In this document: positions 57,008 to 63,901 of the stretch, piece after piece
Layout: each line of letters opens with the position of its first letter
Numbering within the stretch: the stretch's first letter is position 1
Assembly: GCA_025594325.1 (NCBI GenBank)
Contig: JANHCV010000006.1
Span: 1,240,001 to 1,304,000 of the forward strand
Source of the DNA: Blastocladiella emersonii ATCC 22665
Taxonomy: Eukaryota; Fungi; Blastocladiomycota
Reading direction: 5' to 3'
Length of the DNA stretch: 64,000 nt
Position numbers and translations under genes: made by a program
The notes under the pieces: generated by a model
What the model was told of the DNA's origin: nothing
Seen by the model: only the letters and a program-made list of their open reading frames with translations
The model's database searches: none

Positions 57008-58022
57008 TCAACAGCATCGAAGCATGGCCAGCAACACGTCGAGGGTGAATGCCACCACCGCGGCCACGACGTGCGTCCCCGTCAGCATGTTGGCCGTCAG
57101 TGCGTCCGACTTGGCCTCGACGACCTGCTCGAGCGTCGGCCACACGTCGTGCGCGGCCGAGACGCCGAGCGGGATCAGGAACGGCGCAAAGAACAGGATC
57201 AGCATGTCGAGCGGTTTCACCTTCCGGTACCACACGGTGCGGACGACGATGAAGGGGAAAATCGCGATGAAGACCGAGTTGACGGCGATCAGCAGGTTCC
57301 GGTTCGACCGCGAGCTGCTCCATTCGGCGTCGGGGAGTTGCAGCATCGTCACGACGGCGAGCGAGATCATGAGCGGGAGGAGCGCGAGGAAGGCGATGGC
57401 GGAGATGCCGAAGAGCAGCCATTCGAGTGCGGTGGGTGAGTTGGTGTTGGTGCTGGGCCGAGGCTGGATCAGGCCTTCTTCGTCCGAGCTGGGCTCTACA
57501 CGAGGGCAGTAGTTTGGATGAGCCGGCGGCGATGGCCGCGGCCATGGCCATGGGCAGAACTCAATGGGACAGCGCACTCGCAGACTTGGCTGGCGCGTCA
57601 AACAGCTTGTAGATGACGACGAGGAAAAAGTTATGCACCGAATTCGTGACCAGCACCAGAACGTGCATCAGCGCAGGCTCGCCGAGCGGCGTCGGGTTCT
57701 TGGGCACCTCGACGCCGAACAGCCACCCAATCTTGGCCACCTCCATGAGCAGCGAGACCAGCACAAACAGGACGTAGAACCGGCCCTGCGGCCGCTCGTG
57801 CCGGTTGAAGCAGCAGCAGCAGCAGTACCGCCGGACCGCCGGCAGCATGAAGCACGCGCCGACCTGCAGCGCGCCGAAGACCAGCGGGAACAGCGCGCCC
57901 GGCCAACCGAGGACCAGCGGGTACGCCCGCAGCTTCGCGAGGATCGGGTCCGTCCCGTTCGGGTGCGCGAGGACCGAGGTCAGGTTCAGGTGTTGCGCGA
58001 GATAAGGTGCATGGGGTTCCAT
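57008..58022 (-). CDS. Orphan multi-pass (7 predicted TM) membrane protein; intron 57496-57577
   Basis: ORFs 57561-58022 and 57008-57601 join in frame through an 82-nt GTGCGC...TGTAG intron. About seven hydrophobic segments; N-terminal sequons NLT and NGT; CCCCC after TM1 and RCC at the C-terminus. Confidence 0.72.
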
Positions 58023-58445: not shown

Positions 58446-61400
58446 ATGAATCTTGCCACTATGATCCGCGGGGCGCGGCGGTCGCCTGGGACACGACGGT
58501 GCAGCCTGCTTGCCGCGCTCGTCGTGGCCACGGCCGTGTTGCTTCTCGTTTCGACCGCCCAGGCACTCAAAGTCCGGTTGGTTTCTGATGCCAATGTAAC
58601 AGAACCCTTCGCTGCGCAGGCGCTGCGCGGGTGCACGGCGATAGCAAGCGTCAATCCGGACGTGACTTGCAGCTTCTCGTTTGTCTCCGATGTGCTCTTG
58701 CCCGATGAAATGTACTCGACGTGGATGGACATTGTCCGCAACTGTACGACTTTGTTCATTGCTCATGACATCGATTGACCGTACATTCGCTATTGTAGCC
58801 AGCGACGACGTTTTCATTGGTCCAATCTACGTCTACGTCAACGTTATGTTGGTGCTCGCCGACAAGTACCCGGACAAGATCTTTGTCGCTGTCGACTCGT
58901 CTATCACGCCGCCCAAGGACAACGTCATGGGCGTTGTCTTCGCCGAGGACCAGGCCGGCTACCTCGCCGGCGCGCTCGCGGGCGTGTTCAGCAGCGCCAA
59001 AAAGGTCGGCGTTATTGGCGGCGTTCCGATTCCGTACGTTTGCGAGCGATTACGGCCGTGAGCAACGCTCACTCACAGCGCGCACACGTAGTCCAGTCAA
59101 GCGGTTCGTCAACGGCTACCTCGCCGGTGTCCTGTCGGTATGTCCGACGTGCGAGGTGTACTCGACGTACCGTCCGAGCTTCGACAACTCGACGGTCGGC
59201 CAGCTCGCGGCGCGGTCGCTGATCGCGCAGGGCGCCGACGTGATCTTTGGCGCGGGCGGCGGGATGGGCAGCGCGGGCATTCTAGAGGCGGCGCGCAACC
59301 GCGTCTTCGCGATCGGCGTCGACTCGAACGAGGCGCTGACCACGTTCAAGGACCTGCCCGAAATCGACTTCCTGCTGTCGACGGCCGAGAAGAAAATGGA
59401 CGTGGCCATCTCGAGCGCCATCGCGTCGATCCTCTCGGGAAAGCGCGGCGGGTTCAACCTCGTCCTTGACGCGAGTCTGGGCGGCACCGGGCTCGTCGCG
59501 CCGTTCAACTCGACCGCGCTGCACAATTTCTCGACCCCCGTCACCGTGCTGATGAAGAACCCGTACGACGTGTGCGAGACCGCGTCCTTTTTGCCTCGAT
59601 CGACGATCCTGACCTTGATCAACAACTCGCTGAAGAGCAAGCTCACCTTCACTTCCGTGGTGCCCGCGTCGGGCGACGTGCAGCCGCTCACGACTTTCGC
59701 CAACAAATCGTGGGTCGACATGGCGCCGTTTGGCCAGCGCAACAGCATGCCTGCGGGTACGCAGGGCCTCGGCGCGGCCGTGGTCGGCGGCAACCGCATT
59801 CTCGCGTGGGGCGGTCAGACCGCGTTCGGCGAGCACCCGACGGCCATGATGGCGCTCGATTTCGACAGCTTCACGTGGACCCAGGTGGCCGACGCGAGCT
59901 CGGTCAAGCCGACGGGCCGCGCGTTCCACGCGCTCGGGTTCGACGCGGCGGGCGGCAACATCTGGATCTACGGCGGGCAGTCGGCGTCGAGCGTGCTCGG
60001 CGACACGTGGAAGTACTCGGTTGCGACAGCGACGTGGACGGCCGTGACGCCGGCGACGAGCCCGGGTACTCGGACCAACTTTGCGCACGCGGTGCTCGAC
60101 CGGACGCTGTACGTGTACGGCGGCGTGACGCCGACGGGCGAGATCCAGCGCGATCTGTGGGCGCTCGACATGGCCACGGGCGCGTGGTCGCCGGTCGCGG
60201 CCAAGGGCTCGGTGGTGCCACCCGCGTTGCAGCACGCGGCGCTCGTGGCCGTCAACGGGACGCAGCTGGCGCTGTACGGCGGGACCAACGAGCAAGGGTC
60301 CGTGACCAACGCGCTGTATGTTCTCGACGTGGCGACCATGACGTGGCGCTTCGAGCAGCCGAGCACCCTCAAGACGGGCGCGCCGCCGGCTGCCGAGCGT
60401 ATGCGCGCCGTGTACCTCGACCCGCGCCGCGTCCTGTTCACGGGCGGACTCGGCGCGTCGGGCCCGCTCAACGCGACGTGGGTGTGGAAGATGGACGAGA
60501 GCGAGTGGTCCAACAACGCGTACGGGTCGCTGCCCGCGGCTTTGCACAGCCACGCGCTCGTCACTTTCAACCAGAGCGCGTACGACAAGGCGTGTCAGTA
60601 CTCGGACATGCCCGTGTTCTCGCTGTGCACGCCTGCGACTGTCAACGCTGTCGTCGCCGTCAGCGGCGTCACCAACAGTCCCGGAGGCGGCGTGCTCGTG
60701 TCGTTTGCAAGTCCGGATCCTCCGCCGCCGCCGGTCGGCGTGATTGACGCGGGCGCCAAGTGGGCTGTCACGGTGCTCAACGCGATCGGCCTGCTCCTCG
60801 CGCTCGTGTTAGCCACGTTCCTGTGGGTCAAGCGCGCGCACAAGGTTATCAAAGCGAGCAACATCCGTTTCGCGGCCCTGATCCTGCTTGGCGCGATGCT
60901 CGCGCACATCGGGTTGATCGCGAGCTCGTGGGTCACCGACTCGCGCACGGCCATCATGCTCACCGCTTTCTTGGTCGGATCCGGGTACACGCTCATATTC
61001 AGCGGACTCGTCGTCAAGACGTACGTCATCTACGGGATCTACGCTTCGCGGGGAGCCGCGATGCGTAGTCCGCTCAAGTACCGCGCCGCCGTGGCGTTCG
61101 CTCTCGCTGTTCAGCTGCTTCTCGTCAGCTTGTGGTTCCGGTTTGACGCCAACGACTTATTCTCGATCAGCGTGGGTGGAACCGTGTGGAGCGTGCGATC
61201 CATGGACTCGCACTGGGTACTCTTGTGCGCTTCGCCGGTGATCATTCTCACCATCGCCGGCGTCATTCTCAGCTACAGGACCCGGCAGATCGAGAGCAAG
61301 TTCAACGAGGCCTACTTCATTGCGATCGCGACCTACGTGATTGCTCTCGCGCTCCTCGTCGTCGCCCCCGTCGTGTTGCTTCTGCAGGCGCCGCTTTTAC

Positions 61401-61708
61401 AGTACCTGATCTCGTCGATTGTCGTGGCGCTTGCGACCATCAGCGTCCAGCTCATTTACTTTGCGCACAAGGTGACGGCCGTCTTCGTTCCTGCGTTCAT
61501 GCTGGAAGACGACAGCTTCGTCGCGAGCCAGATCGCCGACAACGAGAGCGCTAACTCGGGCTCTGTGCGATGCAAGTACTGCCGCCAGGTCGTTCCGGGT
61601 GGGCCGAACGCCACTGCGTCGGGCCTGGGAGTACAGCAGAGTAAGAGTAAAGGTGGCGCGGTCGTGTCTGCGCGCCCAGTAATCAGCTCTGTAATTATAG
61701 AGGATTAA
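58446..61708 (+). CDS. Class C (GABA-B/Grl-like) GPCR: BMP-family binding domain + Kelch beta-propeller + 7TM; introns 58744-58798 and 59034-59091
   Basis: Signal peptide. BMP/PnrA motifs LADKYPDKIFVAVD, FAEDQAGYLAGALAG, KVGVIGG, FVNGYLAG, LIAQGADVIF, AIGVDS, STAEKKMD. Six Kelch repeats (e.g. LYVYGG...DLWALDMATGAWS). 7tm_3 hallmarks KVIKAS, LVVKTY, YRTRQIESKFNEA, FAHKV. Confidence 0.88.
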
Positions 61709-62508: not shown

Positions 62509-63901
62509 TCAACCATCAAAAGCAGCGAGCTTGGCCGCCTCATCCTTGGCGGTAACGCGGCCCTGCCAAATCGACACAGCGCCCTGCTTCCCCTTCCCGC
62601 CGCCACCACGGATCGATGGAAAGGCTTCCGCGGCCCTCGCGATGGCAGACGCGAGCGCGGAGCCAACAGGTCCCACGATCAGGACGGCGCCAGCACCTGA
62701 GTCATCAACGGCGGAGAGGACCGCAGGGGTGGCCATCTTGGGTTCCTTGGACTTGAGCGCATTTGCCATGGCGAGTAGCAAGTCCATGGAAGCCGGCTCC
62801 TCCGAGTGGAACCGGCGAACCGCCACGTCCGCGTCGGCGAGGTGCAGGCGAACGAGCGCGGCCGCCAGCGAGTCGGTCGCGGCCTTGATCTTGCGCTTGT
62901 CAGCGCGCGACGCCTCCACGAGCTTGCCGACCTTGTCCTCGAACTCGGGCGCGCCGCTGGACAGAATGGCCGTGAGCGCCACGTCGCGCGCGTGGGCGAC
63001 GGCCAGGTGCTTGCGCACGCGGTCGCCAAACGCAAAGAAGATGCGCGTGTGGGTTCCGCGGGCGCGCTCGGTCGTCGGGCGCACCGTCACCGATTGGATG
63101 TGCAGCGTGGTGGGCGGATGCGTGCCGCAGCAGAGACTGACGTCGACGTCGCCGATGGTCACGTAGCGAACAATGAGCTCAGCGGCGCCGACAAGGTCGG
63201 CGGGGATGGTCGAGTTGATGATCTGCGAGGGATCCGTTGGCGCCGTCTCCGAGACGGTCACGGCGTGCGCGGCGGCAATGTGCTCGGCCACGCGCGCCTC
63301 GAGCTCCGCCAGCGTCTTGGCGTTGATGGGCTGCGCGGGCACGCCAGGCACGTCGGGCGCCACCTCGATATAAGTCCACTCGGGACCGCACGACCTGGTC
63401 AGGGGAGGAGAGTGTGAGTTACATGCGCGGCTCCAGACAAGCGCAGTTTCGCACGCAAAGCCAATCGTACCAGCTCATGGTTCGCCAACCAAACTCGCGC
63501 TGAGCCACCGCGGACAGGAGGTGCTGGCCGCAATGCTGCTGCATGTTATCCAGCCGACGCGCCCAGTCAACCGTAACCTGGACGGTTGCGCCGGCCTGCA
63601 AGAGCTCGGCCGCAGCATCGTCGGGGACGGCGACAGTGTGGACGGCGGTCGTGCCCTTGCGCTGCACGTCGACGACGTCAAACGTGGCGCCTTGGGCCTC
63701 GAGCTTGCCGTAGTCGGCGGGCTGGCCGCCGCCCTCGGGGAACAGGACCGTGTCTTCGAGGACGACAAGGAGCAAGGCTGAAGCGACGGCGGGCGGCTCG
63801 ACCGACACAATTCGGGTTACCAGTGACCGCGCGAGCGAGTCGCGCTGACAGAGCAGGGTGCCAACCGGTTGAGTCGCGAGGGCAGTCGTTGCAGAGTTCA
63901 T
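62509..63901 (-). CDS. Freestanding alanyl-tRNA editing protein (AlaX/AARSD1-like); intron 63395-63470
   Basis: VLEDTVLFPEGGGQPADYG, RRLDNMQQHCGQHLLSA (HxxxH), SLCCGTH (CxxxH), and a C-terminal GGGGK..QG DHHA1-like tail. Confidence 0.92.

Follow-up and report, generated by a model that had tools for sequence, protein, structure and literature searches.

A class C receptor of Blastocladiella emersonii with a Bmp-type flytrap and a Kelch propeller in its ectodomain

The window analysed here is a 64,000-nucleotide stretch of eukaryotic DNA of high GC content from the fungus Blastocladiella emersonii (contig JANHCV010000006.1, positions 1,240,001 to 1,304,000). A gene on its forward strand (58446-61708, three exons), corresponding to B. 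emersonii H9P43_005756, encodes a product of 1049 amino acids (aa) that is a class C G protein-coupled receptor (GPCR) with a Bmp flytrap. Receptors of this kind are known and belong to a sizeable, partly catalogued family. The order of the domains was signal peptide, Bmp/PnrA domain, six-bladed Kelch beta-propeller, proline-rich stalk, class C seven-transmembrane (7TM) domain and a tail with a CKYC motif. The proteins are in the databases, while no publication was found that describes the three-part ectodomain or its reuse as a module. We consider it probable (about 0.62) that the protein is a plasma-membrane class C GPCR, dimeric, with a probably nucleoside-sensing flytrap and with the propeller serving mainly as a stalk or spacer.

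Domain architecture and topology

All coordinates are positions in the window, read on the forward strand, and residue numbers are those of the 1049-aa model. Domains were assigned with Pfam at gathering cut-offs, and the signal peptide and transmembrane (TM) segments by a hydropathy scan. An earlier interpretation of this DNA, referred to below as the sequence-only reading, had proposed a Bmp domain, a Kelch propeller and a class C 7TM domain in one protein, and the Pfam matches to PF02608, Kelch and PF00003, all above their cut-offs, bore this out. The signal peptide that it had claimed was likewise found, as a hydrophobic segment at residues 19-37 followed by AQA/L, and the paralogue and the orthologues from Catenaria and Allomyces have homologous N-termini.

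Several features placed the propeller outside the cell. Its place is after the signal peptide and before TM1, and it carries conserved N-x-S/T sequons and a conserved cysteine pair. Ten sequons were located in the ectodomain, apart from two in the tail. The ectodomain cysteines 63, 75, 339, 679 and 690 were kept in at least 20 of 22 family members, and the Cys195-x-x-Cys198 pair in most of them, a conservation that fits an oxidising, extracellular location. The cysteine count of the ectodomain is odd, and one could speculate that the spare residue forms a bond between protomers. Among eight full-length members, mean pairwise identity was highest in the flytrap (35%), followed by the propeller (33%) and the 7TM domain (27%).

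The structural model was that of an 81%-identical paralogue rather than of the window protein itself, and was calculated with AlphaFold2 from a 10-sequence alignment. Its mean pLDDT (predicted local distance difference test) score was 64 (flytrap 70-87, propeller 70-94, helices 60-80) and its pTM (predicted template modelling) score 0.42. The order of elements was a two-lobed alpha/beta domain, six four-stranded sheets (404-718) and seven helices. Foldseek matched this model to the propellers of LZTR1, KLHDC2 and KLHDC10, to Streptococcus pneumoniae PnrA and to mGlu3. The six Kelch repeats counted in the sequence-only reading thus correspond to six four-stranded sheets with matches to six-bladed propellers.

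The Bmp flytrap and its putative ligand

PF02608 was matched in exon 2 (45 bits) and again at the start of exon 3 (55 bits; cut-off 24), and the conserved flytrap cysteines were residues 63, 75, 195, 198 and 339. A search of the sequences of solved structures (PDB) with the N-lobe alone gave nothing useful, and a family profile was required. The profile, built from 14 family flytraps, matched Lbp best (E 5.7e-48), followed by S. pneumoniae PnrA (5.5e-45), 4PEV, TmpC (6e-42), BmpA (9e-37) and BmpD (3e-34). The matches to the atrazine/guanine binder 6PI5 (1e-21), Med (5e-20) and the riboflavin binder 4IIL (2e-9) were weaker, so that the riboflavin, atrazine and Med relatives were 13-38 orders of magnitude worse than the nucleoside binders. 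Lbp was crystallised with guanosine (PMC9601137), and PnrA, TmpC, BmpA and BmpD bind nucleosides (PMC7093131, PMC13325309).

The pocket that nucleoside-binding Bmp proteins have in common comprises, in BmpA, F27, F151, F176, V224, D225 and K242, with D98, D225 and K242 contacting the ribose (PMC13325309). HMMER alignments and residue spacing equated BmpA F27, D98, F151, F176, V224, D225 and K242 with receptor F55, D132, F183, F208, V254, D255 and K278. All seven residues are therefore present in the receptor, and most of the 22 relatives retain them, the ones linked to cyclases and kinases among them. As mapped by sequence, the receptor has both the aromatic sandwich and the Asp/Asp/Lys ribose triad. 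The loop preceding the first aromatic residue, which sets the base preference in PnrA and TmpC (PMC13325309), was divergent, with ANVTEPF in place of G-x-x-D-D-x-S-F-N and with the Asn after the Phe replaced. Since the pocket residues are retained and the closest solved relatives are all nucleoside binders, a ribonucleoside-like ligand is favoured.

The same architecture could instead hold a flytrap for another kind of ligand, such as a pterin or folate (as in fAR1), riboflavin, a purine base such as adenine, or a sugar. The divergent loop, with its replaced Asn, would suit such a change, and the solved Bmp members include the binders of riboflavin (4IIL) and atrazine/guanine (6PI5). Those relatives are, however, far more distant than the nucleoside binders, and the ribose-contacting Asp, Asp and Lys have been retained together with both stacking aromatics, so that we regard a non-nucleoside ligand as less likely, yet a real possibility. 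The sequence-only reading had suggested a nucleoside- or pterin-like ligand; the pocket upheld the nucleoside part, while pterin, folate and riboflavin were less favoured by the comparison. In favour of a purine base, adenine is a reported trigger of zoospore germination in B. emersonii.

The flytraps also differed within the family. Chytrid and holozoan flytraps had an additional C-x(4-7)-C pair in a loop (between residues 315 and 325 of the aligned sequence Bem1) that was missing in Blastocladiomycota, and Chytridiales-type members lacked the C-x-x-C at 195/198.

The Kelch propeller and stalk

The propeller matched Kelch family PF24681 with E 1.7e-43; Kelch_1, Kelch_2, Kelch_3, Kelch_4 and Kelch_6 matched too (four to five further families above the cut-off), as did PF24981, and the Pfam matches include the attractin/LZTR1 propeller family. 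The Foldseek target TM-score to LZTR1, KLHDC2 and KLHDC10 was 0.7-0.8 (about 0.8 for LZTR1 and KLHDC2) at a sequence identity of 13-18%. An insertion in blade 6 holds the Cys679/Cys690 pair (60593-60628), which was kept in 21 of the 22 family members. The stalk that joins the last strand to TM1 was proline-rich in chytrid members as well. Pfam gave no match to the Cys-rich domain NCD3G (PF07562) in the receptor or in any relative scanned. The domain order thus puts the propeller directly on the membrane, at the position of the metazoan Cys-rich domain, which agrees with the earlier proposal that Kelch repeats replace the Cys-rich linker between flytrap and TM1. The accompanying statement that Kelch propellers are usually cytosolic held for the solved matches; extracellular precedents exist in the attractin/LZTR1 Pfam family and, less clearly, in weak matches to NanM.

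The conservation of the propeller, similar to that of the flytrap across the family, raises the question of whether the receptor is a sensor with two inputs, in which the flytrap reads a small molecule, the top face of the propeller independently binds a second ligand, for instance a cell-wall polymer, a glycan or the surface of a protein, and both signals are integrated. The top faces of Kelch propellers often bind ligands (RAS proteins in LZTR1, degrons in KLHDC2), several relatives had weak, sub-threshold Pfam matches to the sugar-binding propeller of NanM, and the class C ectodomain of fAR1 reads a soluble and a surface-bound ligand (PMC5969738). Yet much of the conservation fell in the structural Kelch motifs (GG, W, R), and no ligand site could be identified on the propeller, for which the confidence of the model was modest. 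The propeller is, moreover, always membrane-proximal on a short rigid stalk, an arrangement that suits a spacer. A two-input sensor is on balance unlikely, and a propeller acting mainly as a spacer is preferred.

The 7TM domain and cytoplasmic tail

PF00003 was matched with E 3.5e-27 and 96 bits (cut-off 33.5) over profile positions 7-251 of 251, and seven hydrophobic TM segments were found between residues 737 and 972. In a phmmer search against PDB sequences, mGlu2, mGlu7 and mGlu3 had E-values of 2e-8 to 7e-8 and GABA-B2 one of 5e-6. The domain had been described as GABA-B-like, an assignment that was rejected because mGlu2, mGlu3 and mGlu7 score slightly better than GABA-B2; judged by its sequence matches, the 7TM domain is of generic class C type. 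The class C motifs aligned with those of mGlu2 as VVKT/LTKT at the end of TM3, KFNEA/NFNEA before TM6 and FAHKV/FAPKV in TM7. The TM7 motif was HK in both B. emersonii copies and PK in Catenaria and Allomyces.

The cysteines of mGlu2 at the top of TM3 and in extracellular loop 2 (ECL2) were aligned by phmmer with a Met and a Ser of the receptor, as expected from the earlier observation that this pair is absent. In a 22-sequence alignment both cysteines were present in Phlyctochytrium, Chytriomyces and Corallochytrium, and both were missing in all Blastocladiomycota members and perhaps in Fimicolochytrium too. By this alignment, the loss is derived in Blastocladiomycota and is not a feature of the architecture.

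The CKYC motif that had been noticed in the tail was located at 61571-61582. It is part of a C-x-x-C-x-Q motif (LRCKYCKQ-like; 61565-61588 in the window) that was found in nine of nine Blastocladiomycota members checked, in several chytrid members, among them Phlyctochytrium and Chytridium lagenaria, and in one Logan protein. Metal-mediated pairing of the tails or lipidation are possible functions.

Gene model and deposited annotation

The reading frame opens with the ATG at 58446, ends with the stop codon at 61706-61708 and is interrupted by two introns (Table 1). Introns of B. emersonii have been published as 55-333 nucleotides (nt) long (PMC2773782), a range into which both fit (55 and 58 nt). 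Removal of intron 2 brought back the conserved motif GGxPxPPVK(R/K)F. Exon 3 has neither a stop nor a frameshift, so that a single open reading frame (ORF) spans Kelch through 7TM; the possibility that Bmp/Kelch and 7TM belong to two separate genes was ruled out by this continuous frame. The paralogue H9P43_000555 (1067 aa, contig JANHCV010000001.1 of the same genome) is 81% identical and has the same architecture. Its gene (L001:4001-7381) shares the two intron positions and phases, has GTACGT donors and contains a third intron after codon 52. Eight orthologues as well as the paralogue were colinear with the 1049-aa model. Among the sequencing runs listed, three DNA runs of one sample and no RNA run were found, and the splice model is accordingly one backed by comparison with these sequences and not by transcripts.

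The deposited H9P43_005756 is 893 aa long, and its residues are identical to those encoded in the window apart from three differences in the model. It begins at Met89, losing the signal peptide and the first flytrap lobe; it splices out the in-frame segment 61186-61272 (87 nt, GT..AG), which is TM5 of the 7tm_3 fold; and it terminates directly after CKYCRQ, where a GT follows at 61589. All of the segments left out were kept in the paralogue, Catenaria and Allomyces, and for this reason the three departures look like annotation errors in the GenBank entry. That the window model is itself the artefact, a GC-rich ORF fusing unrelated pieces or a decaying pseudogene whose true product is the shorter GenBank protein, would account for the three departures from a model based on comparison rather than RNA, but is very improbable, given an exon 3 free of stops and frameshifts, the conservation of the omitted segments (TM5 among them) and the recurrence of the architecture in more than 15 species.

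Table 1. Features of the receptor gene and its product in the window
Feature	Position	Strand	Details
Exon 1	58446-58743	+	
Intron 1	58744-58798	+	55 nt, phase 1, GTACG...TAG; same position and phase in paralogue
Exon 2	58799-59033	+	
Intron 2	59034-59091	+	58 nt, phase 2, GTACGT...TAG; same position and phase in paralogue
Exon 3	59092-61708	+	
Signal peptide and start codon	58446-58565	+	aa 1-40; basic n-region, hydrophobic core 19-37, AQA/L cut predicted
Bmp/PnrA Venus-flytrap	58566-59674	+	aa 41-372, two introns inside; Pfam PF02608
Six-bladed Kelch beta-propeller	59711-60709	+	aa 385-717; Pfam Kelch, AlphaFold2 model of paralogue, Foldseek
Pro-rich stalk (SPDPPPPPVG)	60710-60739	+	last propeller strand to TM1
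Class C 7tm_3 domain	60755-61483	+	aa 733-975; Pfam PF00003, phmmer, hydropathy
Cytoplasmic tail and stop	61484-61708	+	aa 976-1049; C-x-x-C-x-Q motif (CKYCRQ) from 61571

Family range and other outputs

The range of the family was determined by a word-indexed search, then by a profile search of 1.84 billion representatives, and by Pfam scans. The word-indexed search found the Bmp, Kelch and 7tm_3 combination in Catenaria anguillulae and Allomyces macrogynus. The same combination was present in Sorochytrium, Phlyctochytrium bullatum, P. planicorne, Chytriomyces confervae, Blyttiomyces, Chytridium lagenaria, Chytridiales sp. JEL 0842 and the holozoan Corallochytrium limacisporum, and B. emersonii carries two copies. 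By profile, as distinct from Pfam scan, Fimicolochytrium and Obelidium have shorter models covered into the 7TM region, and Blastocladiella britannica has a family member with a short model. An architecture that the sequence-only reading did not recognise from any described receptor therefore proved to be widespread in Blastocladiomycota and Chytridiomycota and present in Corallochytrium.

An intronless gene for the three-domain protein was found on a metagenome contig with eukaryotic neighbours (an SH2 kinase, U-box and MATH proteins); a second metagenome contig had no informative neighbours. No prokaryotic Bmp-Kelch protein was seen in a search that was not exhaustive.

The Bmp-Kelch ectodomain was also joined to other outputs. 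In Pigoraptor chileana and Chromosphaera perkinsii (Nk52) it preceded a single TM helix, a kinase-homology domain and Guanylate_cyc, and in another Pigoraptor protein a protein kinase alone. A tree of the ectodomains strongly supported a Blastocladiomycota clade, and its backbone was unresolved, so that no inference is drawn on the ancestral output or the order of the fusions.

Some other sequences were set apart. A Chloroparvula japonica MMETSP transcript (P0096, green alga) had Bmp, Kelch and 7tm_3 (7tm_3 E 2.5e-45), and either the family extends beyond opisthokonts or the transcript is a contaminant. Four proteins of 3000-4700 aa, mostly from Logan assemblies (P0054, P0055, P0058 and P0061), had 9-22 separate matches to the Kelch or Bmp parts of the search profile. 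In the 2932-aa Phlyctochytrium planicorne protein named after CC2D2A (P0070) the receptor is the C-terminal third, and in the 1249-aa protein of Chytridiales JEL 0842 (P0066) a galactose-oxidase-like E-set domain follows the 7TM domain; both are probably fused gene models.

Two further loci flank the receptor gene. On the reverse strand at 57008-58022, head-to-head with it, two ORFs in overlapping frames code for a protein with several TM segments and a CCCCC run; neither had a Pfam match. Also on the reverse strand, the ORF at 62509-63363 matched tRNA_SAD, the second additional domain of Ala/Thr-tRNA synthetases, and from this match its product looks like a free-standing protein of the editing type.

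Proposed mechanism

As in other receptors of class C, the working unit would be a dimer. The flytrap would close on a small ligand, in all likelihood a (ribo)nucleoside or a close analogue of one, and the propeller, as a rigid, glycosylated and disulfide-braced spacer, would relay the reorientation of the protomers to the 7TM bundle, which in turn would signal to a heterotrimeric G protein. Ligand-induced reorientation of a dimer may be regarded as the way in which class C receptors, receptor guanylate cyclases and receptor kinases are all run. The presence of the Bmp-Kelch cassette on these three outputs is then most simply explained if it is a self-contained dimeric sensor for any output that a dimer operates. 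A role in zoospore chemotaxis, settlement or germination is plausible.

Several points weigh against this mechanism. The 7TM domain has no TM3-ECL2 disulfide and has HK rather than PK in TM7, so that its mechanics may be atypical. The propeller, with about 330 residues, is as conserved as the flytrap (33% versus 35%), and a purely structural role for it is unproven. The AlphaFold2 model is of the paralogue only, and its domain packing and the segment 316-400 are unreliable; the pocket was mapped by alignment and offset arithmetic, not by superposition. Finally, there are Bmp-family proteins for riboflavin and hydroxyatrazine, and the flytrap of the Dictyostelium class C receptor fAR1 binds folate and lipopolysaccharide (PMC5969738).

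A broader and rather doubtful conjecture is that Bmp-Kelch is an ancient opisthokont sensor of extracellular nucleosides or purines that was joined to class C GPCR, kinase-homology/guanylate cyclase and receptor kinase outputs. If it were true, extracellular purine sensing would predate animals, with machinery unrelated to the P1 and P2 receptors; it would gate zoospore behaviour or germination in zoosporic fungi; and the ectodomain would be of a hitherto unrecognised type in which the propeller has an indispensable mechanical or dimerising function.

Relation to earlier work and significance

Among the Glutamate-family GPCRs with a BMP domain catalogued by Krishnan et al. (2012; PMC3251606) are the Allomyces orthologues AMAG_08984 and AMAG_12053. 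The same study counted 13 Dictyostelium BMP receptors of the Glutamate family, placed Bmp in the Periplas_BP clan, found NCD3G to be absent outside Metazoa and also from GABA-B, and described the loss of the family in Dikarya. Since neither GABA-B nor any non-metazoan member has NCD3G, the domain is not class-defining. De Mendoza et al. (2014) described Bmp-7tm_3 as a conserved configuration (PMC3971589).

The word Kelch was absent from PMC3251606, from PMC3971589 and from a 2025 survey of GPCRs in animal relatives, and full-text literature searches turned up no account of Kelch repeats in the ectodomain of a class C receptor. In the B. emersonii genome paper, GPCRs are mentioned in general terms only. 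The ESM Atlas had no large cluster with Bmp, Kelch and 7tm_3, the closest being an Evosea Bmp and 7tm_3 cluster of about 700 aa. In the literature searched, the three-part architecture was thus undescribed, as the sequence-only reading had supposed; of its proviso that the architecture might be already common and characterised, the first half applies (zoosporic fungi and a holozoan), and for the second no published description was found.

Class C GPCRs are the standard example of how a bacterial binding protein became the head of a eukaryotic receptor, and how the head is coupled to the 7TM domain is an active structural question. The present proteins form a natural family in which a rigid beta-propeller substitutes for the Cys-rich domain or short stalk, and the same cassette on guanylate cyclases and kinases offers a comparative system for the task of the membrane-proximal element. 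The results also supply a ligand hypothesis, nucleosides, for orphan receptors of zoosporic fungi, chytrids included, whose chemosensory receptors are essentially unknown, and the deposited model of H9P43_005756, which looks erroneous, could be corrected.

Comparison with known systems

The closest known receptors are the Grl proteins of Dictyostelium (Bmp and 7tm_3; fAR1 is GrlL), which are likewise non-metazoan class C receptors with a flytrap of the Bmp rather than the ANF_receptor type and without NCD3G, the Bmp assignment being that of PMC3251606. One of them, fAR1, is a chemoattractant receptor (PMC5969738). The Grl proteins have about 700 aa, with the flytrap almost directly on TM1, whereas the window receptor has 1049 aa, of which about 345 residues (propeller and stalk) lie between flytrap and TM1.

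The metazoan mGluR and GABA-B receptors share the 7tm_3 fold, the KT, FNEA and (P/H)K motifs (aligned with mGlu2 and mGlu7) and the logic of a flytrap followed by a 7TM domain, and GABA-B, like the window receptor, has no Cys-rich domain. The similarity is low (E about 1e-8), and unlike in the metazoan receptors the flytrap is of another periplasmic binding protein family, a propeller replaces the Cys-rich domain or short stalk, and the TM3-ECL2 disulfide is lacking.

The bacterial proteins PnrA, TmpC, BmpA-D and Lbp resemble the flytrap in fold and in the seven pocket positions (profile E 6e-48 to 3e-34). They are soluble or lipid-anchored parts of ATP-binding cassette importers, whereas in the window receptor the flytrap serves as the N-terminal sensor of a eukaryotic protein and has additional conserved cysteines and a base-specificity loop of divergent sequence.

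The solved propellers of LZTR1 and KLHDC2/3/10 have the same six four-stranded blades but belong to cytosolic substrate adaptors, while the propeller of the window receptor is extracellular, with N-glycosylation sequons and a Cys pair in blade 6.

In animals, the ANF_receptor flytrap serves both class C GPCRs and single-pass receptors of the kinase-homology/cyclase type. The Bmp-Kelch ectodomain offers an analogy to the animal receptor guanylyl cyclases, as it is likewise found on 7tm_3 and on a kinase-homology domain with Guanylate_cyc; it differs in that the ectodomain is of another family with a propeller added, and in that the cyclase members are those of Pigoraptor and Chromosphaera, not the gene in the window.

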